A stretch of DNA of 64,000 bases, from contig OZ004610.1 of the NCBI GenBank assembly GCA_963924565.1, positions 12,896,001 to 12,960,000 on the forward strand. Direction: 5' to 3'. The stretch is from Ascidiella aspersa (taxonomy: Eukaryota). Within the stretch, counting starts at the first letter, position 1, and each line of letters begins with the position of its first letter. The position numbers and the translations under genes were made by a program. The notes beneath the pieces are model-generated. The model saw only the letters and a list, made by a program, of their open reading frames with translations. It ran no database searches and was not told the DNA's origin. Shown here one piece after another: positions 26,401 to 50,232 of this stretch.

Positions 26401-29400
26401 TCTGCGGCCGGGAATTTTAAGGGTCGAAGTTCGCCGTCGCGATTGCGCCGCCGCACCGTATTAACACGCGCTCGACTTTGCTCAGTCCGTGATACCAGTG
26501 CGTTTACAACCGCCTATAGGTTTTGAACGATTTTATTAGCTGCGAACTAACTTATAGACATTTCGGTCGAAACAAGACTTTTTAGTCAACATTTCGAATT
26601 GAGATACGGTACTTACTAGACCTATTAAGTAAATGTGTATAAAACACGTACAGTATTCCCTAGAAGAATCTACTAGTTTGATCGTTGTGCAGATAGAAAA
26701 AAGTTCAGGAAAATATGATTGCCTAAAAGTCATGAGAAAATATATTAAAGATGTAATTTTTGACTCAAAAAGATAACTATATTGCACTTGATAAGTTGTC
26801 AGAACATAAGTCTAACAAGCAATCTTTACTCACTTAAATCGAGACTCTTCCGGTTCCTGCCTCTCTTGAATGCGCGCGAAAGCGAGCCGGAGAGGTGTTG
26901 GACTAGTTTCTTCTTCCTGGTGTACGACTGACCTAGAGAGCCCTCCGGAATGCCGATGGGATCGATCTGTACGTCCTCACTGGAGGAGGAGTGTCCTCCG
27001 GCTGGCTGGCCGAAGCAATGGCGTGGTGAGACTGGGGATGGGGTGGGAACCAGTAGCGGGTCCTGGCTGTGGGAGGATGTGTTTGGCTCGATGTTGACTG
27101 CAACAGAATAGAGCGGTGTTAAGTGAGTTTTGGGTAAAAAAAATCGGAGGCCTATATGGACGTGTTTGGCGAAGAAGATGTCTTGCTCTTCTCAACTGTG
27201 ATCTGAAAGGTACCGAGAGAGCATTTAAAGAACAGATGCGCCTTGTAAGCTCTTTCGGCAGCTTGCAAATGTATTGGTGGAGCGGCACTTCACGTGCTAT
27301 TTATTCAGGCAAATATGATCGATTGTCTTTTAAATTATCGTTGGCGGGAATTCCAGCTTATGTATCTTTATCAATCCAAATGGGTCGCAAGTCATTGTAA
27401 AATTATACGAAATTTAAGGGTTTCCTACCAGTTTTATTACGGGGTAAGTTTTTTGACTTTACGCGATTGGCCCACAGCCGTCACAAAAAGGAGGTTTAGT
27501 TGCAAGTTTCTTGCCAATCATGGTACATATGAAATGCCAGACGATCGCACATTGAACAGTGTGGTTGCGCAATCGCGTGCACAAACTTTTACAAATAAGT
27601 ATCAGCGATTGCGCGTTGTCAGCAGCAGTGGCGGGCGACCGAACAGAGTTCAATTGCGGCTTTCAGTGCAGGCAAATCGACGGCAATAGTTCGCTAATCG
27701 GTAAAGCGCAGAAGCGATAAGGCAAGCTTCGCCACTCGACAGTAAACGACGAGAGAGACCGCGGAATAGTTTGATTTGTTTGCAACGGGGCGTAAGGGCC
27801 CCATTCAGTTGTGGTTTTACGGTAAAGTCCGAAGTCCGACAAAAAAACACGTTCGCCCGGCAGCAAGGAGAAATAGTCGAATGTCTCACCGGCAAGGGTG
27901 ATCTTGTTGTTGAGGAAGCTCTCATCAGCGGAGACGTGCATAGAGCGGCGTTTCGAGCTGCTCTGCGACTGCATGGCTGCCTGGCGGAGCTGCAAAAAGA
28001 CAAGTTCAGATTTTCAAGTGGATTAAGAACTTAACAGGCGCCTGATCGTTCGTCCGAACGACGGCCGGTGCCGTTTTTTAAGAAAAGTACGGCCTTTTCG
28101 CCAAACTCATGGCGGAGGAGGAAAATACTTAAACCTTTCAATTTCGTGGAAGGCCGGTAGGCTTTCATAATGGGCGATTACAAGCACACATAACATTAAG
28201 GCCTATTGATATTGACCCAAATAACTTTAGAATGAAATAACCGAAATGCATTTTTCTGAACAAAAATCTATCGATAAAAGAGCAAAACATAAAATGAAAA
28301 AAATGGTAACAATACATATAAGTTGATGTTTCAAAAAAGAAGGGCTAGATCACAGTTGTTAACCCACATGTGTGTGTGGATGTTTCTTTGTTTCAAAAAG
28401 TGAGATATTTTTCACAACAGAAAGCCACAAAGATCAAATTAGTATCTATTTTCTTTTACACACCAGGATCAGTTCGTTCTCCAGTTCCCTTATCTTCCTC
28501 TCGTTGCACACGAGTTCGCTCCTCTGCGATCCGACCACCTCGGCAAGATCCTGATGACGTCTCGAGAGGTCGTTCCGCTCACGTGACAAGCGCGATCGCT
28601 CCTCGTCAGCTTCGCGCATTATGTCTTCGTTTTCCTGAACGGAATAATGCCATATTGTAGTTTAAAATTAGAAGTCTTGTGTTATTTTCATTTTCAGGGC
28701 TAAAGGATTTTGAGCTTTGATTTTGCTAAGCGGGTATAACAAACACATATCGAAAAATGAGTAAACGAAAGTTGCTGCCGTTCAATATTTCATTATATAG
28801 TTATAGTTTCCGTGATGCCGTTTACTGCATAACACGTTTTTAAGTTTGTCCAAAAGTAAGACGGGCCGATGTAATATTTGTAGTTCTTAGTCTAGATACG
28901 AAGTACAAGCCAAAATTATTTAATAAAATTGCGGGTGGCCAGAAACATCGTGCCTGGAGGTAATATTTGTTTGCCTTAATCGAGCTACCCTTTTCAATGC
29001 GTGACAGGTTACACAAAATTCAAGCAATGTGTTATAAACATTCAAGGCTGGGACGCGTCATGTCGGTTCAACCCAGCTGTGTTGATTTCTCGCAGGGAAT
29101 CGAAATGTGCGACTCCCGCGTAGAAATTCATAACGGCACTTCACTGCGGCGGTAGCGGGGGTCGAAATATTCGTCGCCGCGTGACTTATCGCGGCTTAAG
29201 GCGCTAATCAGCGACGCCGGTCGCACAGCACGGGAGATTTTCACGGAAATTCTTAACGCTACGAGCCATGGAGACTCAGGGGAGACCCGGCAAGCCTTTT
29301 TTATTTGTTGAAATTGATCGCACATCGACCTGTTTCGGTCGGGTTTAAAATTTAATTTCCGCGCACGAGGAGTCGCCCCGTTCCGTGTTGACGCTGCGAA

Positions 29401-32400
29401 TATTGCCCATATTGCCAATATATAAAGACTATTTACATTTCCTTGCCACATGGGCGCATTATTATTGCCTTTTTAGCCTGAATGAAATAACTGGTAATTT
29501 GTAATAAAATTCACGTTGCACTGGCGGTTTGCAAACGTACCTGAATGGGCGAAGTCCAGCTCGGCAAGAGTGCGGAAGTACCACACAGACAAAAGCTCTC
29601 TATAAATACCAGCGAGCAATGCCATTTACAGACCGGCTTATGGGATAATATCCATTTCAAAGGCGCCTGGCGGCATCAAAGGCGCAGCGATTCACGGTTG
29701 AACCGCAAAAGTAAAGGTTGGCTTTGAGATTTTCGTGCAATGGCGAGACAAAAAGGAGAAAAGTTTGGAGCCGCACTCAACTCTGAGTCGGTTCACAAAA
29801 ACACATTTGATTGGAAAATGCTTCCCTGTAAATTGAATCTCATGGAAGAAAAGCCAAAGGCTGTTTACAGCTTAAAAACAGACAGCTGTGTAAAGGTAAA
29901 TAATTTTAAGGATAGAGAGCAATAATAAATTTCGTTCAAAACACAGAGTTTCATTTGTGCACAACTTGGTTTCATACAATGAAAAAAAAACACCGACTAA
30001 CCTTCATCTGAAGTTCAAATTCCCGGATAAAGTCTCTCAATTGCTCTTCCTTGTCCTCCACGGTTTTCTGCATCTCGTTTATCTGGTTTAGCAAGTCAGC
30101 TTTGTCGTTTTTCAGTCGCTGTCGCTCGCTTTGCAAAGCTGCGAAAAGAAGCGAACATTATGGTAAAAAATTTTTTGTCATGCATCGAAAATAAATATTA
30201 AATTCGTAAAAATAACTTAAAAATTGTGTTTAAACACTAAATCATATAACCTAGGTAAACCTTCTTTACGATAAATTGACTGATCAACAAAAACGGTGAA
30301 AGCATCCTTTTACGATAAAGTCTACACAATCGATGACACGTCACAACACTTATTCGTTCGTCAAATTTAACAAACTATTTTCTAAAAATTGGTTTTAAAC
30401 CCATATGAACTCCGAAAATAATTTCATACTACGCCTCCTTATAGTCACAATTTGTGATTAACAACCACACAATTTTAAATAGTTTAACATTTTATAACGA
30501 GCACGATTTTAACTTAAATGTTTGTTAAAGTCAGTCATAGCGGCTTTGTGTTTTTGCTTTGATCTCTAAAATCGAAGGTATTTCGACAAATGCGGACGTA
30601 TTCGATCAGTTGTGGGCAGATGGGAGGGTTAAAAACGCCGACATAAATACTACAGCAAAAAGAGCAGAAGCGTTTAATCCGCTACAAATCCTCGTGTCTT
30701 CGCGCCCACTTACTTTGCACGGCGTCCTTGCTGCGATTTTCGTTGTTGGCAATCTGTTGCTTCAGGTTGTCCATCTCTTTCTGCAGCTGGCGGTTCTGCG
30801 AACTCAGAGACTTGTTCTCCTCGCTAATCTTGTTCATCTCGATCGTACCTGGCAATGTGATAATCATTTCTTTGTAACGCGATTTTGACTTCAAAACTGT
30901 TTAGGCGTTTGGGCTTAAAAGGGAGCATCTCTTCCATATACATGGGAATAAGAATTATTGTTTTTAAAGTAAACTGTAATGAATTTATCTATTCCTGAAA
31001 GGTAAGATAAGGGACAAAAATGAAGTGGAAAATATATAAGTGTATAAGTTACACAACAAATAAACAGAAAGGTGGAAAATATATAACTGAACAAGTTAAA
31101 CATCAAATAATTATTTGTTATAATCAGAGAACTTCGGAGCATAATGTTTGGAGGTTGTAGTAAGACGTAATGAGAATATCAAAGCCCATACAGAAGTAGG
31201 TATCGTTTTGAACGTTTCGAATAACGAAGTAAGTGCCTTCTCTCTATGTTGAAAATGAATAAAGAGTTATTCGAAACGTTTTAAAATGATACCCACTTTT
31301 GTATGGGCTTTGATATTCTCATTACTACAACTTACAACCATTATGCTTCAAAGTTTTAATCGAGGTTTGCGGTTTATACCTTGGCAGTGAGCGCAGCCTT
31401 CTTTGACGATGGAAAGTTCTCGAAGCTTCTGGTTGGTCATGTTCAGTTCCACACGGAGCGTGTTCACCTCGTTGTTGGCCGACTGGATCGTTCCGTCGAT
31501 GTGAGTGGCCAGCCGTTTGTTGTTGTCCACCATCTTTTTAAACTTGCTCTGTGAGAAATTGCCACATTTCGTAAACATTGACCCCAATCCAAACACCAAA
31601 TTTTAAAACTGGCGTTTAATAAAAAAAAACACTAGTAAAGTAATGCATAGATAGAACAGTTTAATTGATAGATTTTAACCATTTTAATCAAATTGATGGA
31701 TTTTTATCAAATTAGTAATTTTTTTAATTTATTTAAAAAATACGGGTTATTAGTATTTCCATTCTAATTTCTAAGGAAAGGTCCTCCTAAACTTTGTTTA
31801 GTTTTAGGGCATAGGGACATCGTTTACATAGCACATTGGTTATGGACTGAGATAAAAGTGAGAGCACACGATAAGGGTTTTGTGAGTATACGACATTGTA
31901 CACATAGCGAACTGCCTCATACCTGTGCGTCCATGAGAAGTCCCCGCATCAATGATAGGGATGCGTGGAGGGCGTCCCGTTGCTGGGGAAGAAGAGCGCT
32001 TTGATCCAGTAATGAAGAAGGGGGAGCGGTCAGGTCGCTCTTCCGTCCTCCCGCGGTCGTATTGAGCGAAGAACTGAAGATGAACTGGAGAATCTGCTCG
32101 CTCAGTGAGTCGAGGGACTGCAGAGCTGAATCGAATAACAAGAAGGTTAAGTTTATTCAAGTCGATCAACTTTTTTATCACACCCTGATATTGTGTTATT
32201 CTACAATGCAGCGGACTTTGGCTTGAAATGGTAACTTTTCGTTAAAAAATGGTAACTTTTTCGAAATTTATACGCCCGGTTGACCATGCGCTATAAACGA
32301 GCAACATCTTACGAAACAAGAAAAATTACATGTCAATGAGCACCGGGTTTACGGTACTTGGTAACTTACCGCCGCGGGATTTGCCCGAATCTGTTGAACA

Positions 32401-35400
32401 GCGACAGCAAAACAACAGCCGAACTTGCACTAGGCTACTGGGAATCGGTTGATGCCAGTTTGTCGCGGCTTCGCTTTTCCGCAAGGAACAACAACAGCAG
32501 CAAGCTTAGCTCGAAAACCCTACGCACGTGCTGTCGAAAACCAACTGATACGTAAACCACAAGAGAGCCGTTTACGTGGCAACTTCTAGAGTATCCGGCT
32601 ACATTTACACCACTCTGTTTTTCGTGGCGTTTTTAACTGTCTTTGAATTTTGCCTAGGAATGGAGAAAGGAACACTTTTCGGTGATATTTTCTAGGTATC
32701 GAGATAACCTTGAAGGCTGCAAGGCGCTATGTTCAGTGGGTGTTGAATTTGCAAAACCGCAGGCATTTGTTCGTGGCGCGGGTGCACTTGAACTAACGCG
32801 CACGGGACCAAGTCGCACATCCTGTTTTCCACCCGGCTTTGGCGTTATTAGCGGGGCCTGTGTAATGATCCGAAAGGAGGTGACCGTCAATCTAACGCCG
32901 GGAAGCCGGCTGACAGCAGTTCACGCGGTTAGCAATATCAACTTCGAACGATTTGCAATGCTTTGTGCTGACATCAACTGTTTTTTGACAAAAATATTTC
33001 AAAGTGATGATCTCAGGCCTTTACTGCACTGAACTGGTCGAGAAATATACCTTAGACTGCAACTATTTCAGTAAATATTTTCGTAGCTATCCTTTACCTC
33101 GCCATGGTAAACACAATCTAAGCTCTGCTATAGTGACATTTCAAGCGATGTTTTTGTTTTTCGCACGATCCACGGAGTCCGTTTTACCTTTTCACCTCCC
33201 AAGTCGTTTTGGCGCCTTAACGCCCTACGAAGATAGAAATCTGATAAGGGCTCTCAATGCTATCTCCGTGGACACGGGTCCAGTTGGGCGACCTGATACC
33301 AGCCAGTATACCTGTACAGCAGAACGGGCTGTCGAGTTCTCACCCTCTTCTCTCCTCCCACCACCTATATACGTCGAACGGCGCGACTACAAGGCAAACA
33401 GCGATTCGCGACAGAACAAGCGATCAAACGCAAAGTCAACAAATCACCTTTGGCCGATCGCTCCGGGAACACAAAGGGGCGCCGGCGACCCGCCCATGGC
33501 ACAAGCTCCTAAGCGGGGTCGAAACAAAGATCTGTCCGTGTACGTTCTGTAGGACCCTGTACAATCGGGTTGGGAGTGCGCAAGACAAACATAGGATATC
33601 AGGGCGCGAACCTTTTGGTGCGAATGACCTGGACGGTTCGAAACGTTTTCAACCTTGAACGATAGACGCGGTGAAAATTCGCGACAAGTGACGCGATATG
33701 TCGCACTTTGGAATTTATGCGCGATTGTAATCCTTTATTTGTTGAATTGCCGAATCTGAACGATCGCACAATTGTTTTCGAATCTATATTTAAACAAAAA
33801 ACCTTTATCGTTGCGGGTTTAAAGGTTTTTCCGATTTTGTAGTGGTTCGCTGGGATTAATCGGCTACACATCGCGCCTTCTCGCGAAATAAATCCTTACG
33901 GCTGCGCAGCTCGATCACAATTGTGGTTTAATCATACTTCCAAGCCAACTCTCATTGTAATGCTGGAAGTATGTGCAGCTTTTTTAACTCGCTATAGGTT
34001 TTATTCTCGGTCTAGTTCTGTAATTTTAAACAAACCGACCTTTCTACACAATTTCATATAACCGGTTACAATTTTGCCACCACAATGAAAATCAGATCCT
34101 TTTCCTAAATATGTGTATTCAGGAAACGGCTGACCAACCGACTGGCGTTTTGCCTTCTGACCAATGAAAAGGCTTGTGCTCAATGCATTTGCGGCCGCGT
34201 CCGAACCTTTGGCATGCGATGCTAAATTATTGATGACCGCGCGGATTGCGGCCTGGTCTGAAAGATTATTAGTGGGCAGCTAAAACCGCGGCCTTCGCAA
34301 CTGACTTTTGAGTGACGGCGACTCGAGTTATGGTTATGAGTCAAAAGGTTCTGCGAAAGTTAATTAACACGTTGCTATTCATTGACGGAATAATTCAAAT
34401 GCAACGAAAGGCGATTTGCAAACAAGGCGTTGTAAAAGTGACAGTTCCTGTTATCAGCGAGTCAAGATGTGAACACGATTTGTAATATCTCGACGCGGGG
34501 CTGATCCTTTAAAATCGAGATTAGGATTCAACTGTGCCAGTCCAATACCTAAAGTCCCAGTTCGCACGCAGCCAAGTTTACGAGCTCGGTATTGATGTCG
34601 TTCCCAACGTCGAACCCGGACGCTGTGGAGAGAGGGGCGGCAGACAGAAGCATATACGAGGCGCCGTGTAAAGTGCGCGGCGGGAGCAAATCACACAGGG
34701 TTTTGCGCGTTCGAGCGGATAAAAGTGCCATTGTGCGCGCTTGCCTGCCCGTAGCAGCAGCAGCAATATCAAGCCGTTTCCTAAAAAGCTCAATTTTCGA
34801 CTGAACTATTTGCCTTCTACCGTGGTGTTGTGCTGCTACTGCCGGTGGCATTCGCCTGGTTTCGTCTAACAACAACAATGCTCGCTCAAGCGCAACGATC
34901 TGTGCAAAGCCCTCCCGCGCAAACACAAAGACACCGACGATGTCTAATCTTTGCCGATGCGCAATTATAGTGGCGGGAAACTTGACAACAGGCATGGGTG
35001 ACGGATCGTGACCACTAAATGTCCATGGACCGTCAAAAGTGTCTCACTTAGTAATCCTTTCCTCGACAATGACTTGCTTAGCAGGTTTTAAATAAACTGT
35101 CTCTACATGGTACTAACTTGTATAAATTCAAAAATCGTTAACAACAAAAGCAATTAGCACCATTTTTATGCAGGGCTCTATTACTTATTTCTCATTTTAC
35201 ATATACGTTTTTTGTTGTTGTCCGGCAAGAGTCCACAACCTAATAAACTCCACGAGACCCGTGCACAAAAGTTAGATACGCCCAATCATTTTCGTCCATT
35301 AGCGGGCAACATTAGACGGCATGAATCTGTTTATAAACATACGTGGCCGCACGTGGCCATTTAAAGCGCAATGCAAGTGAGCCGCAGCCAAGAAACCGCT

Positions 35401-38400
35401 TGTTACTTGATCGACTGCACGTAGACTTGCAATTAGCTACAACAGAGAGTCTCCAATTGTCTGGGTCTACGTGTTGTACTTAACATTGATCCGCACGTAA
35501 ACACGCTATATACACATTAAACAGTGACCGAGCTAAAGACCATTGACTCATGTTCTCAAACCGTTCACAAGCGTAGTTTCGGTTAAAAATTAGCCAAAGT
35601 GTATAGATATTGGTGTTCTTTAATTCAAATCAAGCCAGTTTTTCTAGCGTAGAATTCCAACATTAAACTAAATTGCGCAATAGCCAACCAGACTTCTGTC
35701 AAACACAACTGCTCGCTTCTAGGCTAGCAAATAATATATACCAGCACCGGACTCCTTGAAACCTTCACGGCGCGAGCTGCAACGATATATGCGTGCAATT
35801 CATTAACCATCGACGGCGGCGGCCGCCAATTTTTTTCCCTGCCAGCATATCGACGTTTGCGTTTGTTTAACTTTGAGGGAGGTGGAATCGATCCAGGGAC
35901 AGCACAAGGACGAATCGACTTTCACAGAACCGACAGCGTCCTGGCCTTTACTATAAGTTGCTGCTGCTGCTGGTTTGTTCGGGAGGAGGCGGTCTTTGAC
36001 AGTCGTTAATTTCGTTGATCTCCTTGGCGAATGGATGCCTGTTCGATCGGTCTAGCTTTACGTTGAAAAAAAAAACGGTGCGCCATTTTTGTTCGGGTAA
36101 TCCTCCACACGTGGTGTTTAACGGACCACATGCGGCGTTTTTTATTGTTTGATGATAAAAAGGAATTATCAATTGCCGTGCTGTTTTGACAGAAACACTG
36201 AGGTGTTAATGTATCTTAAATTTGTCAACTACCTAAAACTAGCATTCAAATTCTCTTTGTAAAGCACTTAAAACTGTGGTTCGCTTTATTATAACAGTCG
36301 GTATTGGCAAAAAGAATTGACAGGTGATAGTTTCCCAAGCAAAGGAAGCAATAGCCAATCAGGTGCCAAATATTGATTACAGAGCAGGTGAAAATAATAA
36401 GGATCGGCAAATCGCGTATACATCACAAGACTGACTGACTGCAAGTACTTAACTTCTAACTAGATTTTTAAAAACACACCTAAATCACAATCGCCACCCT
36501 TGCGGTCAAATGATCAAGATAATGTGACACACAGACATAAATGCCCTAGAAGGCCACGCGCAGTTTGCCTTAATCCTAGCTCGGCCGCGTACCGTGGCGG
36601 CACCAAATAAGGCAGAGCTTTGCCAGGGCAGCAGCATCAGCATCTAATCTTTTTCGAATCGCCACGGAACGGATCGGCATCAAACAGGAAAGTCGCTGCA
36701 TCGGGTCAGAAAAAGCGAAAAGGCAACGGCGGCCTTTCGCAGCCCCGCGTGCAAAGCCAAAGGCAAAGAAAGACCGACGTTTCGTGACCATCCATCAAAC
36801 AGGGCCGTTGACGCTTCGTTTCACTGAGGTTAGTAGCACGGTTGCTGTCATACCGACACCTTATCGTCTGCCCGCCCTTATTTCGACTGATGCAGTACGA
36901 AACGTGACGCCTCGCCAGCCGCCCTTTTCCCTTTGACGCGCCAATGCGTAACTTATTAAAGACGCATTAGCCGAGTGTCAAACGCGCCAGACTTTAAAGA
37001 CAAATATTGATTGCCAGTGGCTTGTAGATTTAAGCTTATATACCAGGCCAGAGATCACTCCCTAACGGACACCGACCTTCTGTTGTCGCAATAGGTAACG
37101 TCGCGTGGGCGAATGGGAAGTCACCAAATAACAATTGAATGAGTTACACCGATGGGTATCGACTTACCGCGATTGGATTGGATTTGTCGCTAACAAGCGT
37201 GCCTCGTTATAGTCACAATGCTGCGTCCGATAATTGCTGCCCCGGTCGATCAACAAAACTCGAGTGGCGACGACAGGCTTTCGATTGTAGAAACGTTATA
37301 TGGACTCGCGTGTTGCGAAATCGCCATTTCTCTTAAGGTACACAGTGGTACGGCGATATACTGGTGGATTGTTTGCTTTTAAACGCTTCCGTTAGAACGA
37401 CGCGGGTTCGTATTTCAGGTAACCGAAAGTACAAGACAAGTCGCGTCCAAATTCATTAACATTTTTACAACTTCTGATACAATATAAAGACCCAAGTCTA
37501 TACGGGAGTATAAAACTTGGTAAACGCAAAATGACAAGCAGTATTTTGCCTACTTCAATATAACGTGTGTCACTAATTCTACATGACAGTAAAACTTAAA
37601 AACTCGATGCTTTAAAAGTTTACAAAAACGATATAGTGTTAATGCCACATTACTTCAGTCGACGCTATCTAAAAATTATCATTTTGCATATTGCCGTTGG
37701 CCTTTAGCACGTGAAATTGTTGTTTTTCTTACTCTTTCCCGCTTTTGCATCTATTTACCCATCGTAATTGCCAGTTAGTCAAACTAGGTTTTCCCTCGAC
37801 ATATTGACAAAAGATAAGAACTTTCCTCTACTACTAGGCAGGTTGCACGAGTATACACACCCGCACACACACACACACGCACACGCACAAACACATACGC
37901 GCGTATGTTACCTGATTCCAAGCCGCCATATTTGCTGGCGTAGTTGGCCGCCAGTGCCGCGTCCGAATCACAGCCTTCATGTTTTGCGTGCAAAGCGATG
38001 CCTTTTCCCGGTGGCGACTTTTTCGGTGAATCCACTCTCAACGAGGCTGCTGACGCTGCTGGTAAGTTTGACCGGCCAGAAATCACGGTCACCGTCTCGG
38101 CGAACGACACGCTACGCTTTCCCGCCCCCGAAGTACCTCTGTATGTACTTTCCAGTAGGCATGACGTCATGGCGTTTACCAGTGTAATTCCACTCCGAGT
38201 CAAGGGCACTTGTGGCTTGGCGTTACAACGTCAACTCGGCGCTGAATGGCCCCGACAAGAGGTGTTTCTCCTTTCTTTTCGAAAGTCAAAAACAACCTTG
38301 TTCGCCTATGTCCAGCTATGTTTCCTTATACCTGAATATTGACGACAAATTCACGTTCAACTTGCGGCAAATCACAGCGTACACGCAGCCTTAAGCGGTG

Positions 38401-41400
38401 AACGGCAGTACAGCGGCCACATCAATTTAAAAGTTGACACTATAGTTCCTGAAACTGTAAAACGCCGCTTTAAAGTTAAACTAACTGAGCAAAGATTACA
38501 ATCACACATAATCAGTTGCATGCATGCATGCTGCACAACAGGTCTTCTCGCACAACAGCTCGAACTCCAAATTAGGATAATCGCTCAACAACTGCCAGGG
38601 GCTAACAGCAGAAAAAAGGGCGCCGCAAATGACGCCGTTGCGGCGAAATAGAAACAGTGGAGAGACATAATACGAGAAAAAAAGCGCTGGAAATCTGCGG
38701 CATCCTACAGCGTGCTGCTGGCAGGTCGAGAGACTGCCGTTGGCTTTTATTTGCTTTCGTCCCCGACAAATTAAACACGGCTCCAAAGGCGCGTTGCGGA
38801 AAGCTGGGAAAGCTCGCGCGGCGAAACAACACGTTGCAGTGACGTCACAAAGGCGATTTACCACACGCGCCGCTGTCTGTAGTGAGTCGTTCTCAGGAGC
38901 TTGGAAAATTATAAAACATTACCATGGCTTATTGCGCGCTAAACGCGACCTGAACACATTCCTCACACTAATACTTGAATGAAATATGCGATTTTAACCA
39001 CGGCAAGATTTCCTTTTAAAAATGCCACTATAAACAGTAGTATATGCACTTTACGATAACCTTTCTGTGACATAAAACTAGATTCGGGTGTAGGTACGAA
39101 AAAAGTGTGGTGAATAGACAATATAAATAGCGTGCAATACATGAAACCGTGAAGTATACCGTTTAACTAGCATCGGCGTTTTTCTACTTATTTTGATATT
39201 AGGTATTCACAACTGACCACGTTTATCATTCCACATTACAACGGCACAACAAATCTAGATGTTGCTTGGAGACGACCCCGACTTCCATTGTTTGGCATCT
39301 TGCCGAGAGGCACTTAAGAACGGGCTGATAGGTGTCCCACTCTATGGGAAGAGACCCATTCAAGTTAGAACTGTTCTAGATGCGTGAAGTCAAATCGCCG
39401 AATCTAGGCCGCTAATTGCCCGACGGCAATTCACTAATTGCCACTCGGTCGCGGCGTTTCCCAAGCGACGGGGTTCAAGTCCACGCAACAGGCGTTTCCG
39501 AGTGAAAACAGACCCCTTTCATGCCGAAAAATATCCAGGTTGCTATGCCACCTTTAAAACAGAAATGCATTCGCTGAAACCAACAGCATTATATTCACAT
39601 TACTTTTCACCAAAATTTTTTTCTAGCATTTCGCTAAAGAATATGATTTTTCGATTAAAGTAGTACTGGGCCAAAATAATGCTAACTGGTACTTTCGGCG
39701 GAAACTTGCTTGTTTCAGTTCCTCGCCTCAAAACTGTTGCCCTGGCTGCTGTGTCCCTATGTGTGTTTATCACATTTGACTTGGCGCTACTGCGTGAAAC
39801 AACCTGTCGTTTGCCTCTGTCGAGTTTATTTAGTAGGTGTAATCCTGTCCGTGCCGGATACGAGGGCTCTAAATAAGCATAACACCTTGTCGGGGCGATA
39901 GTGACAGAGACGAGACTGGGTTTGCTTGAACAAACAGACAAACGCGCCGGGTGTTTTTTCCTGCCATGCAATCGACCTGGCGAGTGTAATATCGGGTCTC
40001 GACAAGACCGATTTACGATTGAGGAAATCGCCTTTAAACGCCAAACGTTTGATATTCGATTTTTTCTTTCCGGCTGAGGAGTCTGCTTTGCTGTTTGTTG
40101 TTCTTGGATGCTGAACCTGACGACGCACGACCGCCTGTGAACGGCTTTTGTCTTATTTTTCTATACGCCCTGCTGAGGGACTTTTACCACCTAGGTAGAT
40201 CTTAGGATCGCTCTTCTCTGAACTTTGATAAAACTAACTTTGACGGATTTAACCATTGCAAGTTTCAATAAATCAAAGTTACGATGGCGCGCCCAATGTG
40301 CACTTTGCAGTACATAGCCAACATTATAGGATTAAACGTTCCTGCGAGTTATCACCGCTGATTAACATAAATTTACAGTTGAATAAATATTATTAATAAA
40401 TTGTTCAGCAGTAGACTAAATGGAGAATTTTTTTCAGCAGTAGACTAAATGGAGAAGAATCTAAGCTACAAAAGCTAAACAAGCCTCCAAGTATACTGTG
40501 TGCCTTCAGGAAGACAAGGCTTTCTAAAGCCATACAGTTTGGATCTAAGTTCGATATTCCAATACGGTAATAACTGCGCCAGCCAAATGTTCTTTCAAAG
40601 AGCTCGCTAAAAGGCAATCGATTTTTTTCGAAATCATTCGGCCAACCAAGTCGGTTGAAGCATATGTTTCACATTAGCCCAGGGCCTTCCGAAATCTCAA
40701 AGGCCGCCCCAAGGAAAGAAAATACCATTACACATTCACTTGAGCGAAACGGCCTGACACGTTAATTATAGCTTTCTCAGCGGTTGCCGAACACACCACT
40801 GTAGCGCAATAAAGTCGACTTCCAGAAGGGAACATGACTAATCTTGCCCGGCCAAGACGTCGACCCAGGCGTTATTAGGCACTTCTCGCACCTGTCAAAA
40901 CCAATATAGCGATTTCACTTTTCGCTACGTCTTCGACAATTCACACGTGACAGGTGGCACTTCAACTCGTTTTTCTCGTTCTCCCTCAATCTGTTGCGAG
41001 CTTATTTGCCTTGAAGCAAATCTGAATTTTCTGATAGTTGCACTTTAACAGTATTGTCTCATCCAGTTTTTTGACACATAACGCGTACTAACGGGATAGC
41101 CTTTCTTACAAAATACGATTTTAACTCGTTTGCAAGTCTGGCAATGTTGTCTGATAAACGGTACAAAACAACAACATAATCGATATTCAAGAGGTTGCCT
41201 GAAAGCAGATCGTGGCGAGAACTAAAGAGCACCCCCATATTGGCGAGCCTGCTGCCGGAATACAATCAAGCAAAGCGCAGAACGTGAAGTTCAACAGGGT
41301 TGGAGCAGACAAAAGCGAAAAAAAAAATAGTTCAGCACCGCCCCCTTGCCCGGTTAAATGCCCATCGACGAGGCTCAGTGGCAGCATGGCACCCGTTTGA

Positions 41401-43791
41401 ACACCTGTCAACTCTGCCGGAGTATCTCGCTCGCAAATCCGCCTCAAGCTTGTTCCCTCCCAACGAGGTTCGCTTGGCAAGTACTGTTGAAGCCCTCGAC
41501 GTGCGGCCAGATTACGTGGCCACTTCAACAGCGACCGGCTCCAATTTTCAGGCCAGCTTTTGGGCCAAACTTAACAACTATGAGTGCGTTACACAAGTTA
41601 AGCTTTTTCACTCGTTGCCTGTAAACCATTCTGCAGTGGTGCCACAAAACAAAATCCAGCTTGGAGAAAATATTAATGATTAACCAGTCTCTGCTACCTT
41701 TTTTGTGGATAATTTCCGACGGTAAACAACAACAATGGGAAAAAGCGAAACGCCTGCACTCTCTTTCACCTGTTTTGGCTGCATTTCTTTAAAATGACAA
41801 ACGCTGAGGTTAAATACTTGGTTTTCGTTGGGTGCACTTCTCCAAGAGCTAATTGTAAACACTAATTATTGGATTGAATGCAAGTTGTATACCTTAAGCT
41901 GAAAAGGTTGTTTGCATTGTAACCCTTTAAGCACACATTTTATTAAAAACTTATACGGTTTTTTATAAAATTGTCGATCTGCCAAGCTTGGTCTGATTGT
42001 GTTTATTTGAAAACAAGTTATCAGATCATTCTAAGTTTACTTATTTATTTATTAATTGCAGGTAAAAACTCGCTAGGCCTAATTGACCATTAGTTGTTGT
42101 TAAAATCATCAAGATTTTTTCGGAGGCAATGCCACTAAAAAGGTTAAAACCACTGGCTCAGTGCGCAATTTGCTCTTAAAGCGCAAAAGCAATCCCAACA
42201 TATCGTGGGTTAAGCGTGAGGAAAGCAATGGGAGGACCGAATGGGGTCCTGGCAGCCGTACACAGAAGGCGAGTTCGCCGACACCTTAATTGTTGTTGAC
42301 AAAATAGGTAAACGGAATCCGTTCAAGAGGCGCCCCGGGTCCTAATTTGGCCGAATAGTCATCCTCGGACAAACTGTAAGGTTGGTGCTTGATACCTATT
42401 AATGCTCGTATACGTGCTGAACCCAATATAAAATATTTTTAAATGTGCCTTCCTAACAACTCAATCAGTTTGCATTGGCGATCCAAAGGCCGCCGAGCCC
42501 ATTCTAGCAATATATTTTTAGAGGTATAGTTGAAACGTGCAGTGAAGGCTTTTGTGAAGGGACCATGTAAACAAACCATACAAGGGGCGGAAAAGATAAC
42601 ATAGCTGAAAAGGCTACCGGTCGCGTGTTAAAGTACTGATCAATGTATGCTGTCGTAAACGGTCGGTTATGAGTATTTGAAATGTTAAAAAGAAGGTGGT
42701 GAGCATTGCCCCATTATGTGGGAGTGAGACATATTTGTAACAAGCGAAAATCAAGGTAAAACCGTAAATGCTGGATTTAAATGACTACTGTGTCGGCAAA
42801 GAGAAGCACTTGTTTGGCCGCGTCGGACGCCACTTGAACTAAACGCGATGGATCGAATAATGAAGTGCAATCAAGGCTGCAGACACAACTTCCAAATCGC
42901 ACAGCACGCAGCTAATGGAATTTCCCATCAAATAATGGTGTACACGCGCCGTTAAATCGATAACGCAGACATACAAGGCGCAATTTGTAAGATTACCCCG
43001 AATCCCGAGGGTAATAACAGGCTCTCATCGGTCGTAAATCGAACCGGTGTGTTACAAAAACTGGGCGATGGACGGCGAAATCGAGGCGCAAAAGTTGATT
43101 GTATTGGTGTCTAGTCTTCCAAACACCTTGCTTTGTGGCGCACATACCACGACGTCTAATGGTTAAACTGGCGCGAACAAAGCGCACGGGGCCGGTGCGG
43201 GCCGTAAACACGACTTCAATGTGTCGAGAGACGGGTAATCAAGTGCGGCGATGAGGCCAAATCAAACTCGATACATCGCGATCGGCTTAGCGCACACAAA
43301 GGCACCGGTCGGGAAGAAAGCGACCGCGGGTCGAGTTGCTGACTACTGCCGATGTCTGCCACCGTTCACAGCGGCCGAATTCCTCGCCCGAAGAGCCACT
43401 CGCTGGACAGAGCGATCAAGTGACGCCAACACACTATTTACCGCAAAACAGGCGCTGCGCTTGGCCCGCCGAGTGCCCTCTATCTCGCGTTTACTCGAGT
43501 GGCGCGCAGCGCGTTTTTTTAATGACCGGCTTCGAGGCGAAATCCGTTGCCCGACGAGCAGTTTTCAGCCTGCCTTGTTCAGGCAACGACAATCCCCGGT
43601 TTCCTTTCCTATTCACAATGAAAGCCATTCAAACGTTCACACAAAGAACCGCAATTTCCCACTTTCCGAAGCCAAATGCAAAGGCAAACTGTGAAAACTA
43701 TAAATAAACAAAATAAAACGCTCTTACCTGTGGATAGGTACTCCTTCTGTTGGCACTTTGCTTCATTGTCGATGATAATAGAGTCTCCCAT
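17425..43791 (-). CDS. KAZN: Kazrin (periplakin-interacting protein; liprin-related coiled coil plus three SAM domains)
   Basis: Phase-consistent minus-strand exons: 43728-43791, 31923-32125, 31380-31548, 30714-30848, 30002-30138, 28464-28634, 27890-27989, 26834-27097, 22760-22862, 21403-21496, 20604-20722, 19852-20089, 19212-19314, 18498-18663, 17939-18041, 17425-17487. Kazrin-like segments: MVDNNKRLATHIDGTIQSANNEVNTLRVEL, EDKEEQLRDFIREF, SLSRAFKRGRNRKSLD, SAM1 WKADAVLVWL...ENIKSGKVLLGL...HRRKI, SAM2 LDHWWVSEQWLRDIGLTQY...IDGR, SAM3 VWNNTRLIQWAKSIDLKEY...SGVHGALMVLEP. The first and last exons are the least certain. Confidence 0.88.
18801..18858. repeat. (TAATTG)9 hexanucleotide microsatellite, probably inside a short decayed DNA element (about 18759-18890)
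   Basis: Nine perfect TAATTG units. The flanks TAGAGTTG...CAACTCTG form a short inverted repeat. Confidence 0.85.
19627..19850. repeat. Diverged tandem duplication, unit about 112 bp, in a kazrin intron
   Basis: AGGCCAGGT.CAA.CTTGAC...CTCATTTTATTCGTTAGGGC.ATA.CCA.GTG...ATGGTTACTTTTT.CGGTG.AAAC occurs twice in tandem. Confidence 0.75.
20145..20300. repeat. Diverged tandem repeat, unit about 73 bp, in a kazrin intron
   Basis: GTGGCGTTACCAGCAATT.GATCACC.TAATCTA occurs at 20161 and at 20234. Confidence 0.7.
31130..31355. repeat. Long inverted repeat / fold-back MITE-like element
   Basis: Arms 31167-31225 and 31266-31325 are near-perfect reverse complements (GTAATGAGAATATCAAAGCCCATACA...). They extend outward imperfectly to about 31130 and 31355. 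Confidence 0.85.
32370..32390 (-). CDS. KAZN: Candidate 21-nt kazrin microexon (phase 1-1, adds DSGKSRG)
   Basis: The minus strand reads ...gctgttgttttgctgtcgctgttcaacag|ATTCGGGCAAATCCCGCGGCG|gtaagt. The donor is perfect, and the exon preserves frame between phase-1 neighbours. Confidence 0.5.
37853..37900. repeat. Imperfect (CA)n/(CACG)n simple repeat
   Basis: atacacacccgcacacacacacacacgcacacgcacaaacacatacgc. Confidence 0.6.
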
Positions 43792-45520
43792 TTGGGTTCA
43801 ATTGCGTTCAGACTGAATACGCAAACAACACCGCAGCGAGGCAATTTCAGTCACATAATACGATAAACACTTTAAAATAACAGATGTTAAATTTTAGGGC
43901 TTTAAAAATTGAAATAATTTTGCAATTATTGTGCAAGATAACATAATTTATATCTCAAAGTGGTAAAATGTCATTAACACTTAGCAGCAGATCATACTGT
44001 ACGATTACCAAAATATTAATCCACACAATTAAGATGTTATACTGATAAAAACAATTAAACATTTTACTTTCAGAACAATAAGATATTTTACTAATAAGTT
44101 AATAAACAAAACAAAAACAATACTCTCAAATCCGGTCATTCCTACGCTGTGAGAAATATTAATTGACCCACTCTAGCAAAGCTATATATTACTGTCAGTT
44201 CTGGGCGAATTTCTTTAGAAGCCAAATTATAGAACATCCTCAACACAAGCGGTGCACAAAAGTCACTTTTGACTCTAAACGTCGGCGACAGTACTGTAAC
44301 TTTATCAGGGCAGACAGCTAAGTGTGAAGAAGTGCAACTTGCACGACAGTCAAGCGACAAAGCGTGTGCACTCAGGCACAGCGTGACGCGGATTCTAGCG
44401 ATCACCTGCTGACATCTACCGGTGTATGCCAGAATGGGAGACGTGAGCCAAGGAGACGCTGTTTTGGCAACTCACGTCCCGGTGCTAAACAGGAAAACTA
44501 GATTATAGATATTCCACCTAAAAACGAATTGCTAGTCATTTCATGGACTTTTTTTGAAAATCAGTAGTGTACAATGAAAACACGAAAGCATAGCGAATTT
44601 AATTCTTGATCTGTCGCATCAAACCCGTTTGATTGTTAATCAGTCACTTTTACGATAATACTATCGATGTATTTAGAATCGCTTCCAAAAACCCAAGCAC
44701 ACAACAGCATCAAAGTTACTATTCACCCTGCCCTTTATCTTTCGACTTCCATATAGCACTTCTCCGGTTTTACAACGCGATGCTATACTGAATAAAACGT
44801 TTGTGATAAATTGTACCATTGATCTATATACGATCAACGTCTCTCATTTGAAGTTACCAGTAATCAACTAAGGCGCCCCTTAAAGAATTACAGTTGTATG
44901 GAATATTATGATATTTTACTATGACGAAAGTCTTATTGGGATCTATTTGGCGCTTCACAAGGCTGTATTATTTTTGTCGCGGATTTTTAGTTTTTTATGC
45001 GGTATTTATATTTTGCTCCTAAATGCCCCAATTAAACTCAATACAAACATAAACAAGGTTTGACTGTTAGGCTGTCATTTTGTTTGCTTATCCTATTGAA
45101 TATGGCTAGAGGTTTATAACATTTTACATAGTTTTCTCAAATTTTCCACTATTCGAAACAGCTTTTGTTGGAAATATTTACGCTGAATGAGTCGCGCAAT
45201 ATTACATTTCACGTTGTGAGTGTATCTATTACACTTCACAAACTTTCCTCCGAATATGCTCTAACAAACGAACAAAGAAATAGATCTTAAATTACATTTC
45301 GTGGCTTTCGAAGTTTGTACAATACACAAAGGGTAGAATACCAGTTTCAACGTTGTTGTAATTACACTTGTTTGTGAAGTAGCCCAGGGCGAAACGTTTC
45401 AATTTTATTTAATTATATTTAACTTGAAATTATCTAGAAAAGATGGCGAATAAATTCTGGTCAGTTTGAAATACTATTTTCTTGGCAAAGCAAATAAGGA
45501 ACCTCGTTTCAGCGTCAGAA

Positions 45521-48421
45521 ATGCAAGGAATTAACGTCCAAATAGGCGACAATGCTCAGCTGAGTCACAATATTGTTGGAGCAAGCAATGTTCAATATAA
45601 TGCAAGCTGTAAGTATTAGTTACATTTTGTTGAAAAGCAAGCAATTTACTAAAAATTGTAACTTGACATACATATTTTGATTATTGCTTTGAATGAATGT
45701 TGCCGTGTGTGAATGCGAAATGCGTGGATAACACTATAACACTGATTTTTCATAAAGCTGTATTTCAAAGTTGTGTTTAAATTTTGATTGTATAGAAGGA
45801 ATATTTTCTAGTCCGTACCATGTACATTCTGGCAGGATGATTTCAAGCTCTTGTAGAATGGGAAACAGGTTACCGATAAAACGCCAATTTGCTCCACATA
45901 TTTTTCTTATTTAATAACATTCTGGGGTTAAACTTCATTCAAGCCTTTATCTTAAAAAATTAAATTGAATCAACAATTCAATAAATTTTTGTAGCTTGCT
46001 TTGGGGATTTGATTTAAGTGTTTAGACAAATAGCTTGCTATTAAACGTCTTAATTTAACACATTTTGTGTTGAGTATATATAGTTTAGGGTTTAGGCGTT
46101 ACAGGTTTTAAATGTTAATTGTTTTAGTTTTGTCCATTTGATAGAATACTTGGTACATGTTAGTGAGGTTATCCATTAAAAACATTCATTTTGAATGCTA
46201 TTGACTTAAGTTAGACGAAGAATTAGGCTGTATCCCAGAGGTCGGCAAACTTTTTTTGTCACGGCTCAAAGTACTCTTAGCAGAGCTATTGAAGACGCAC
46301 TACGTAAAACCATTATGAAAACAGTGAAATATTACACCGCCCCCTCAAACACTGCTGTACCATAATGTAATCGTAAAACATACTATGAAACGAAGAGTAT
46401 ACGCACGAAGCGCGAAATTTTTCACTTACATATAGTTGGAGTGGCAAATAATATAGTTCGACAGGCTCTCAGGACTACATTTGGCACGTGGGCCTTTCTA
46501 AGCTGAGCCAATTTTAAAATTCTATTTCACACCAACTTTTAAAATAAAGTGCAATAATTGTACGGCTATCATGCGGTCCACAACTACATGATAACACTAA
46601 ACTATTCAAAATTAACTCGCGGCCCACGGTTTGCCGACCACTGCTGTAACCTAATTCAAATTTTGTTTGGTTTATGTCCATTGTTGTATCCACTGTAATC
46701 CTAGGCCAAGGGAGATTTTTTGAAGCAACAGCAACTTGTAACCACAAAAATTTCCAAAATAAAAATTGTTTACTATTCGAACAATTTAACTTTCCAAGAC
46801 CTGGACGATCATTGACCGTTCTGTCGAGAATGTTTAAGAGCTTCTAAGGTCTGCTGTATCTTGCTTCTTTTTCATTTAATAGTCCAAGGTCCAATGCCCG
46901 GGTTTGCCAATGCTATGGCTGAAAGGATTGATTCAACACCTCAGACTGTCGAACAACCCCAACCTAAACAGAATACAGAGATTTCAGGAGGAACGGAGGA
47001 TCAAGGCAAACCGAAAGTCATGCTCAGTTATCAATGGGATTCCTACGACACCGTTGAAAAGGTTAAAAAGAGTTGTGTCGTTAATAGGGTAAAACAGTTG
47101 TGTTTCGGGATGTCCGATACTTTATATTTTATTCCGATACCGATATCCGATATTTTGAACAATAAGTATCGCGATCTGATCCGATAGCTAATGACGTATT
47201 GCTATACTCCAATAAAAAAATGGGTTAAATTAATATATTCAAGCGGCCCTTTTTGTCGACGCTAATGACGTCTTGCTATATGTAAAATTAATACATTTAA
47301 ACGCGTCTTTTTCAAGGTCTTCAGGCCAAAATTTGCTTTAGGATTAATAAGTTTAGTTACCTCCAATTGTTAACTTACCATAATTAACGATACATTTACT
47401 TTTCAAGTTTGAACCGCTGCGTTGGATCGCAAGAAATTTTTAAGTTTGAAATTCCTATGTGAATTTGGTATCGGATCAGCACCAATATCACCCAAGTATC
47501 GGACAAGTAACGATACTACCACTAGGCGTCGGGTATCGGCTTCGATCAAATATTATCGAACATCCCCAGTAGATTTTTCTATACTATATAAAAACATCAA
47601 CGCCTTTACTAGATGATGTAAACCAGGGGTATTAGTAACACGCTTTTCGTAGGTCCTTTTTTGTATAGATATACAACAGGTTGGTGAGCAGAGGTTTATC
47701 AGTATGGATCGACAGAAAAAACATGGGCGATGACCTTTACAAGGGAATGCAAAACGGAGTAGATCAGTCTGACGTCGTAATAGTTTGCCTTTCAAAAGCC
47801 TACGAGGAAAGCGAAAACTGCATCCAAGAAGCAACCTTCGCGAAACAAAAAAGAAAAAAAATCATTCCGGTGTTTGTGGAGAAGAACTACAAGCCCAGTG
47901 GTGTTGTAGGTAATATATTGCAAAAGATACATTTTTGTTAGTGCGCTATTAATTAAATCGTTAAAAAAATGACGGGGTCATAAGCGTACAGCATTTTAAT
48001 TATTCGTCAGTTAAACTCAAATCTCTGTTTACGTTGTTATTTTAGGAACCTACCGTATGACGTTGCATGACTTCTTTTTGTTAAAGCGTAAACTAGGTCA
48101 CATGTTGTTAAAAACCTATGGAAGGGGCTACGATAAATTTAATTTTTACAAAACGGTTTAACAAAGCATAACAAAATTGTAAGATAAGCAATACTGTTTT
48201 ACGAACGTTTAACACTGTTGATTTGTACGCAAAAAGAAAATATTTATTCATGTTAACCTTGATACTCCTTAGATTTCATCATTGCCGGCAAGATATACAT
48301 TGATTTTACTTCTGGGCGATTTGAGGATAGTTTAACGAATCTACTGGCAAGAATAAGCAATCAAGCACCTCAACCAGACGTCAACCAAAAGAAGAGTTCG
48401 CAATCTTGCGTGATAATCTAA
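45521..48421 (+). CDS. TIR-domain (TIR_2-type) protein, 218 aa, with N-terminal RHIM-like motif and C-terminal CaaX box
   Basis: Four exons with matching phases (1, 0, 1): 45521-45608, 46883-47061, 47669-47909, 48273-48421, total 657 nt. TIR motifs: VMLSYQWDS, LVSRGLSVWID, VDQSDVVIVCLSKAYEESENCIQEATFA, KIIPVFV, IYIDF. The protein starts MQGINVQIGDNAQL and ends KKSSQSCVII*. Exons 2-4 are firm; exon 1 rests on its GTAAGT donor and phase match. Confidence 0.85.
46236..46643 (+). mobile_element. hAT (Buster/Charlie-like) MITE in intron 1 of the TIR gene; same family as 52869-53476
   Basis: TIRs CAGAGGTCGGCAAAC...GTTTGCCGACCACTG. TSD CTGTATCC/CTGTAACC (7/8). Internal blocks (AACGAAGA.TATACGC..., AATATAGTT.GACAGGC) are shared with the 52869 copy. 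Confidence 0.85.
47105..47568 (+). mobile_element. Non-autonomous DNA transposon (hAT-like) in intron 2 of the TIR gene
   Basis: TIRs GGGATGTCCGATA...TATCGAACATCCC, with multiple CCGATA/TATCGG subterminal repeats. Homologous to 2068-2425. Confidence 0.7.
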
Positions 48422-50232
48422 CAGAAAATAAAAATAAACGATTTGCTTGACTTTCTCCTATACATGAAAGTAACGACCGTGACCGTTATGTTTTGCGCAT
48501 ATTTGGTTTAAAATTCTCGACCCGTTGCTATAGTTCAATCTCAAGGCGAAAATTATTTATTGGTACTATTAAATTAACTGAGAGAAAAGATTGCATTTTG
48601 TTTGTCATTAAATTTGTGTTGATGTAAATGGTTAAATGCTATGTCTTGATTAACGGATACTTACCATAATGTAGCTATTTGCCGCTTATGGTACATTAAC
48701 ATTTTTTTGTTCTTGTTTTTTCTTATTTATAAATACAAGAATATCCATGCTGATAGCAATGTGCATCCTACAGATATATGTTGGGGTGTAGTCTAGCAAA
48801 TTTTAACGTTGAACGATTGCAAAAATTTCCTAACGTAGCATTTCAGATGCAGTAAAGCCAACGCTTAAATCACTGAAAATAATTTGTTGCTGGACGGATT
48901 CCGTTCTTGAAACGTTAAGTGGCAAAAATGTAAATGTTAGGCTTCCGCTTTAATATCGGAAAATACGATAAAACTACGAAAAGTGTTAAAACTACGAATC
49001 AAAATCCGATTAAACTACGTTATTTCAAGTGCAACATCGGCATTTTATACGTTTTTAGTTTAGAGAGTAGCAATATGCGCTTACATGTGGGGTCATAAAA
49101 TAATACAATTCTGGTATTATTTATCAATCGTATAAGTTTTTTTTATTTTATGGTTAAAAGTTTCAACTTGGCAATCGTTTAAATAATTGTTGTGACTTTT
49201 GTTATAGGTATGTTAACGACCACCTACAGTGAAAAATAAATAGTGAGCCCATTACTGGTAAATAGCATTTCATAAGTTTAACATAAATACAAACAAATAA
49301 TGTAACTTAGCGTTATTATTTTAGATCCCAGTTGGAAGTCTACCTCGCTGCAGTTTATTAAAACAACAGCCAGTAACACAACAAGTTAAAATGGCAAGAA
49401 AAAAGAGGCTGTCCACGATATTTGTTTAAAAAAAAGTTAAAGATGGCATTACAAAATTACGTCATTACTTAACGTAAAATAAGTAACCTTTAATGCCGAC
49501 TGTGCCTGGAACACCTGGTGCATTTTCTTGGATACAACGGACATATTGCCATGACGTACAAAACACCGGGTAAAATTTCTGAACTAGATCAAGATTGCCA
49601 AAGTTGCATTTTGGAAAGAATCTACGTCCCTCCGGCGCTCGCTTATGTACTTTGACTGATATACATACACAATTAGCTGATTAAGTTTTTTGATTTCTTC
49701 AAAACAATGTATGCGATTAGGGCCCATGTTTATCAAGACTTTCCCAGAGATCCAGGTTAATTATTCTATTTCCGCCTGAACAACTTTTAAAAACATAAAA
49801 GAACTCCAAGCGGTTAGATAAGACAAATAATTCCTTCCGCGGCGTGGCAGTAAAAGTTTCCTAACTCCCAAGGCAGTGTCGTCCCATGACGTCATCAAAC
49901 TTCTTCGATATATTTTGGTCAAGCCCGAGGGATTTCACGTTGGTATTTACCTCACTATTGTTAACAGTTAACTTTAGACTCTGTTGTTGGCCGATGATAG
50001 TTAATATGTAGCATGTATCTAAATATATATATAGCCGAAGCGAAAGGAGAAAGTGGTTGCCATTAAAGGTTTGTGGTAAAACAACATAGAAAAAGGTTAG
50101 CTTACAAAGTTTGAAATAGTAACGTTTTGTCATTTAGGCATCATTCTAGCCGTGGTGTGGCACAGACATCACGCTTAATTTTATCGCCGTTACCTGGTTT
50201 CTATAGGCAGTTCGGTTTACGAGTTGGGCAAA

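Follow-up and report, generated by a model that had tools for sequence, protein, structure and literature searches.

A small gene encoding a protein with a single TIR domain and a C-terminal CaaX box lies on the forward strand of Ascidiella aspersa contig OZ004610.1 (GenBank assembly GCA_963924565.1), at positions 45521-48421 of the 64,000-nucleotide window analysed here (contig positions 12,896,001 to 12,960,000). Its sequence points to a small stand-alone gene whose product is cytosolic, has a single TIR domain and belongs to the invertebrate "MISYxW" branch of Pfam TIR_2. We propose, at a probability of roughly 0.6, that the protein would be prenyl-anchored through its CaaX box and would act at a membrane as an adaptor or as an NAD+-hydrolysing enzyme (NADase).

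Prenylation, a location at the membrane, activity as NADase or adaptor and a possible role for the first exon are all inferred from sequence features. In the proposed mechanism, Cys 215 of the terminal CVII would be prenylated, more likely geranylgeranylated, and the prenyl group would anchor the TIR domain on the cytosolic side of a membrane. Held there, the domain would join other TIR domains as an adaptor, or would hydrolyse NAD+ once clustered. The NADase option is slightly favoured, because the protein retains the glutamate at the catalytic position and its closest relatives of solved structure are NADase TIR domains.

Gene model

The four exons (45521-45608, 46883-47061, 47669-47909 and 48273-48421) measure 88, 179, 241 and 149 nucleotides (nt) and are entered in phases 0, 1, 0 and 1; together they amount to 657 nt, or 218 codons followed by TAA. 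A script check found AG and GT at every internal border, and the window sequence contains no N. The initial annotation of this DNA had already drawn four phase-matched exons, and its borders, phases and N- and C-terminal peptides all match the sequence. Searches were run exon by exon, each with a single exon as query. The features of the locus are listed below.

45521-45608, + strand: putative exon 1, ATG start, 29 codons and 1 base, N/Q/G-rich; followed by GTAAGT, with a phase that fits exon 2
45533-45604, + strand: four hexads, NVQIGD, NAQLSH, NIVGAS and NVQYNA, with Asn every 6 residues; from period-6 self-similarity
45536-45547, + strand: VQIG tetrad, model residues 6-9; read in the sequence
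46883-47061, + strand: exon 2, P/Q/E-rich linker and then the first TIR strand (MLSYQWD from 47020); T-rich tract and AG before it, and an end that aligns to the family MISYxW
47669-47909, + strand: exon 3, TIR core; Pfam TIR_2 match, directly continuing exon 2 in the family alignment described below (A1)
47828-47830, + strand: GAA codon, Glu 143 of the model, in NCIQE; family column C-x-x-E
48273-48421, + strand: exon 4, last TIR strand and helix, short tail, CaaX box and stop; FIIAGKIYIDF aligns to the family IxAGKLYxDF
48389-48418, + strand: KKSSQSCVII, a basic, Ser-rich stretch with the CaaX box (Cys 215); read in the sequence, with the same type of ending in relatives
48427-48438, + strand: two adjacent AATAAA hexamers, 6 and 12 nt past the stop, likely poly(A) signal; from a hexamer scan

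AATAAA is common here, with 163 matches in the AT-rich window, and its position after the stop argues only weakly for a poly(A) signal. A tblastn comparison of all fetched relatives with the window matched nothing beyond these TIR exons and revealed no extra domain exons, so the locus looks like a small stand-alone TIR gene.

Both long introns carry inverted repeats, at 46236-46250 and 46629-46643 in intron 1 and at 47133-47192 and 47456-47479 in intron 2. The arms are 15-20 nt long, 75-93% complementary and separated by about 300-400 nt, and they look like remnants of small inverted-repeat transposons. An 8-codon upstream open reading frame (ATG GCG AAT AAA ... TGA) occupies 45443-45469, 78 nt 5′ of the proposed start; it includes an AATAAA at 45449 and would be relevant only if transcription begins further upstream.

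A complete TIR domain of the MISYxW type

Exon 3 matched Pfam TIR_2 (PF13676) with 67.9 bits and an E-value of 1.5e-18, compared with a cut-off of 28 bits, and also matched Pfam TIR (PF01582) with 29.4 bits. The TIR domain of the initial annotation, which had proposed a TIR_2 search as a check, is thereby recovered well over the cut-off from this exon alone. A full HMMER scan of a library of 1.84 billion representative sequences returned 2862 relatives of exon 3.

We then relied on an alignment, A1, that set each of the three exon peptides on its own against 13 small single-TIR relatives. Exon 2, which closes with MLSYQWD and 7 further residues, stops one column before the start of exon 3, and exon 4 starts one column past the end of exon 3, leaving a spare column for the split codon. 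Homology thus supports junctions 47061/47669 and 47909/48273, since exons 2, 3 and 4 tile adjacent columns of A1. The TIR domain is complete from first strand to last helix and contiguous over exons 2-4, and every family-conserved position is retained.

When the A1 profile was compared with solved structures, the best match was Cat1, a CRISPR-associated TIR NADase (3e-11), followed by RPS4, a bacterial TIR, SARM1/TIR-1 and MyD88, with MyD88-type matches weak. In the profile alignment, the C-x-x-E column reads NCIQE here versus C-W-D-E in Cat1 and C-V-R-E in RPS4. In NADase TIR domains the catalytic glutamate occupies this position.

Elsewhere in the genome, five TIR core exons fall within about 60 kb, all on the + strand (G000:C4:7860337-7918745; loci L002 and L004-L007). 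Their identity to exon 3 is 35-45%, and two pairs have equal scores; the region is a tandemly duplicated TIR gene array. Exons 1, 2 and 4 have no paralogue in the same genome, and the fetched flanks of 8 distant exon 3 paralogue loci held no convincing CaaX-stop exon or tetrad exon.

The CaaX tail and predicted lipid anchoring

The model terminates in C-V-I-I followed by TAA, which places a cysteine at position -4 and two aliphatic residues after it at the C-terminus. Tails and tetrads were counted over the best 150 of the 2862 TIR relatives. About 30 of these 150 end in K-S-[KS]-[ST]-C-a-a-[L/I/M] after a long low-complexity tail. They come from bivalves (Mytilus, Mercenaria, Ylistrum), gastropods (Aplysia, Lottia, Pomacea), an annelid (Dimorphilus), rotifers (Adineta, Rotaria), a crinoid (Antedon) and a hemichordate (Ptychodera). 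Each carries the label uncharacterised; a second TIR domain is present in most, and in some a Death domain lies ahead of the TIR domains. That so many TIR relatives of other phyla end alike strengthens the CaaX reading. The terminal box noted in the initial annotation is thus both present and recurrent among relatives. That annotation had also held that the order of modules in this protein was undescribed, a statement that is only partly upheld: the order TIR then CaaX is common in uncharacterised invertebrate proteins of public databases. Within the literature library searched, no paper described prenylated TIR proteins.

In a tree of 315 TIR segments, the window TIR falls in a 99%-supported half that is nearly free of CaaX boxes, with only two rotifer proteins there carrying one, and mapping the CaaX label onto the tree requires at least 3 changes. 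Given this spread, CaaX is recurrent on TIR proteins, and the window gene is not merely a short member of the tandem-TIR family.

Two small single-TIR relatives, P0064 and P0073, begin MGQCQS and MGCSGS. These starts are probable N-myristoylation/palmitoylation signals, which would place an anchor at the end opposite to the CaaX box. Acylation-like N-termini on some members and CaaX endings on others make lipid tethering seem a repeated theme in this group of TIR proteins.

TIR proteins work by concentration at the right place, and a CaaX-tagged TIR would represent a third route to this end, prenylation, beside the myristoylation and lipid binding of vertebrate sorting adaptors. Uncharacterised TIR proteins with CaaX endings are numerous in molluscs, annelids, rotifers, echinoderms and hemichordates, and the prenylation route would offer a simple, testable handle on invertebrate TIR signalling.

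Coding potential of exon 1

The case for a protein that begins with exon 1 depends on splice logic and on an internal repeat. Only two GTRAGT donors occur in the 3.1 kb upstream of exon 2, and the GTAAGT at 45609 is the sole one there that lies behind an ATG-started open frame in phase with exon 2. The exon 2 acceptor has a good T-rich tract and AG, and the start codon of exon 1 has a purine at -3. Asparagines at residues 5, 11, 17 and 23 divide the peptide into four hexads, with a period-6 self-similarity of z 2.9 (p 0.004 at this one period and about 0.05 when corrected for 12 periods). At the DNA level the hexad units share just 5-9 of 18 bases. A period kept in the protein but not in the DNA fits selection at the protein level.

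Splice logic and the period-6 repeat provide limited support for exon 1 and for its junction, 45608/46883. No second copy of exon 1 was found in the 308-Mb genome, and an Atlas search with the unspliced open frame as query returned nothing informative (best score 0.80). On balance we lean slightly towards translation of the 29 residues. If translated, exon 1 would supply a short hexad-repeat stretch (N-h-Q-h-s-x, four times) ahead of the disordered linker, and this stretch might aid self-association.

Searches for a RHIM-type motif

The initial annotation had read the N-terminus as a RHIM module, and VQIG at 45536-45547 does match the RHIM core tetrad (I/V)-Q-(I/V/L)-G. The tetrad is present, but the profile, homology and partner searches all fail to bear out the module. 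In the six-frame translation of the window, [IV]Q[IVL]G was seen 5 times versus about 7 expected, which is chance frequency. The Pfam RHIM search proposed as a check gave no family for exon 1: hmmscan returned no Pfam match at E<=10, with RHIM (PF12721, a 22-position motif with a 20-bit cut-off) and Pfam's fungal amyloid motif families included, although HMMER filters hide very weak matches. Neither the tetrad nor a similar N-terminus appears in any of the 150 TIR relatives.

A phmmer search of the PDB with exon 1 found no RIPK1 or RIPK3; it returned only hexapeptide-repeat acyltransferases at non-significant E-values (0.6-1.1), which owe their appearance to the hexad pattern of the exon. We considered a hexapeptide-repeat (left-handed beta-helix) protein and rejected it, given no Pfam Hexapep match, only four hexads and PDB E-values of 0.6-1.1.

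A scan for partner RHIM proteins had likewise been suggested, and genome-wide it returned only a dispersed repeat. The whole-genome Pfam RHIM scan gave 14 weak matches, all one dispersed repeat (...SGVQLGKNNFLS...) that sits in open frames of 17-56 residues, and exon 1 was not among the 20 scored candidates. Two DNA patterns modelled on the hexads matched the genome at chance level, N-h-Q-h-G-x-N with 189 matches versus 153 in the reversed control and N-h-Q-h-x-x-N-h-Q with 50 versus 56. Neither exon 1 nor its hexad pattern recurs above the control count, and so no partner is visible.

Two look-alike hexad loci that were fetched proved to be stop-bounded non-genes. At G000:C8:19892363-19892425 (L028), an 18-nt tandem repeat translates to NVQLF[CF] within a stop-bounded frame of 45 residues and is not a gene. 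The dispersed repeat, translating to ...EFSGVQLGKNNFLSYFKFTNNFTCCY, scores 17.8-20.3 bits on Pfam RHIM and gives rise to false RHIM calls in this genome; its loci (L011-L020) include G000:C2:19665904-19665939, C4:22126173-22126208 and C1:37912121-37912156.

Weighing the alternatives

Several observations weigh against a membrane-anchored TIR effector or adaptor. Among the 1.84 billion representatives, no relative is more than 50% identical to exon 3 and no orthologue was found, and word-index searches with residues 24-82 of the exon 2 open frame and with exon 3 recovered no close fragment. A phmmer search of the PDB with exon 3 alone matched no solved TIR. The nearest tree neighbours of the window TIR are without CaaX, the main CaaX clade lying across the 99% branch, and the box in this gene would accordingly be independent or patchily retained. 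Moreover, isoleucine in the X position is not the commonest prenyl-transferase signal. The same absence of an orthologue, in the representatives and in the word-index searches alike, could indicate a lineage-specific TIR duplicate that is decaying or not expressed and whose terminal motifs have no function, as could its single copy, with distant paralogues alone (at most 45% identical), and the repeat-like inverted repeats in both long introns. We consider such decay highly improbable: canonical splice sites join the four exons in one intact frame, no family-conserved TIR position has been lost and AATAAA follows the stop.

There is an appreciable, though smaller, chance that exon 1 is non-coding, the mRNA either beginning in exon 2 or carrying an untranslated leader spliced to it. 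Translation would then start at ATG 46894 or 46915 and yield a TIR-CaaX protein of about 180 residues without the N-terminal motif. Both ATGs are in frame within exon 2, whose frame is open from 46816, and the second has G at -3 and +4; the second donor, GTGAGT at 45216, could close a non-coding leader; many relatives begin just a few residues before MISYxW; and exon 1 is without a homologue in any search made. Set against this, a good T-rich acceptor precedes 46883, a perfect GTAAGT donor stands behind an ATG-started frame in the exact phase needed, and periodicity at the protein rather than the DNA level fits translation.

Were exon 1 translated, it could also be a RHIM-type amyloid motif that polymerises by templating and so gathers the prenylated TIR at a membrane, in the manner of fungal and bacterial amyloid-motif-plus-effector proteins. 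A RHIM or amyloid module is not supported by our analyses, and we regard it as unlikely. The tetrad is followed by D-N and L within residues 6-14, a stretch presumably resembling the RIPK3 core, which we treat as a lead only; a second N-V-Q stretch and the exact period-6 asparagines could form stacked short strands, and a disordered linker follows. Known RHIM cores use residues on both sides of the tetrad, however, and here only 5 residues precede it. The Pfam and PDB searches returned neither a family at E<=10 nor a RIPK match, the genome scan yielded only the dispersed repeat in its frames of 17-56 residues, no partner copy of the exon or hexad pattern was seen, the tetrad occurs in 0 of 150 TIR relatives, and the whole idea depends on a putative exon. 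In its favour, amyloid signalling motifs are known on bacterial TIR effectors (PMC7889193), and RHIM proteins of immune architecture are known from Branchiostoma and other invertebrates (PMC4262963).

A bolder and very doubtful version sets RHIM homology aside. The translated hexads, VQIG included, would form a short self-stacking beta-solenoid or amyloid-like element that polymerises a prenylated, NADase-competent TIR on membranes. If true, the hexad element would be an animal counterpart of the bacterial and fungal amyloid-motif-plus-effector cell-death modules, outside RHIM by sequence and with no partner visible. Such a design would extend known ones, because invertebrate RHIM proteins (PMC4262963) and bacterial TIR amyloids (PMC7889193) have already been reported. 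The amyloid idea would matter far more than prenyl anchoring; it currently depends on one short motif in putative exon 1.

Comparison with known systems

The predicted protein shares a MISYxW-type TIR_2 domain, a low-complexity tail and a terminal K-S-x-S-C-a-a-L/I with invertebrate TIR-CaaX proteins (Mytilus XP_071171147.1, Aplysia XP_005098116.2, Ptychodera XP_070570166.1, Adineta CAF1424241.1), which are mostly tandem-TIR proteins, some of them ARM/Death-TIR-TIR. In contrast to those proteins, which span 400-1500 residues, usually carry a pair of TIR domains and often include a Death domain, it has one TIR and a much shorter tail. Its TIR also lies outside the main clade of tandem-TIR CaaX proteins, across the 99%-supported split of the tree.

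Among vertebrate adaptors, TRAM (TICAM2) and MAL/TIRAP are likewise small TIR proteins with a membrane signal outside the TIR domain. Their function depends on that signal, which acts by N-terminal myristoylation or PIP2 binding. In the window protein the signal would instead be the C-terminal CaaX box, and the sequence relation to TRAM and MAL extends to the TIR fold only. To our knowledge, TRIF (TICAM1) is the one vertebrate protein that combines TIR and RHIM. It has the order TIR then RHIM and no lipid anchor. There is a likeness only if the RHIM reading holds, and the window motif fails Pfam RHIM.

Enzymatic TIR proteins, namely SARM1/TIR-1, plant RPS4/RPP1/Roq1 and Cat1, provide the best solved-structure matches of the family profile and share the C-x-x-E glutamate. 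Unlike them, the window protein has no SAM, ARM, NB-LRR or CARF partner domain, and NADase activity is predicted at most. A short terminal motif beside an effector would match the bacterial BASS and fungal HET-S-type systems, TIR being among the bacterial effectors (PMC7889193). What defines these systems is a neighbouring NLR that bears the matching motif; neither a matching motif nor an NLR partner was found here.

Other genomic observations

Within the window, positions 26001-44000 have a G+C content of 0.42-0.48, versus 0.34-0.40 around them. Pfam searches of the five longest window open reading frames gave no match, and the long frames of the 26001-44000 block were likewise without a match. 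Elsewhere in the genome, a pattern search revealed a long tandem array at G000:C3:14291840-14652158, whose units measure about 5.2-5.8 kb and lie in oppositely oriented blocks; more than 60 copies share the 21-mer AATGCCCAGTTTGGTGCTAAT.

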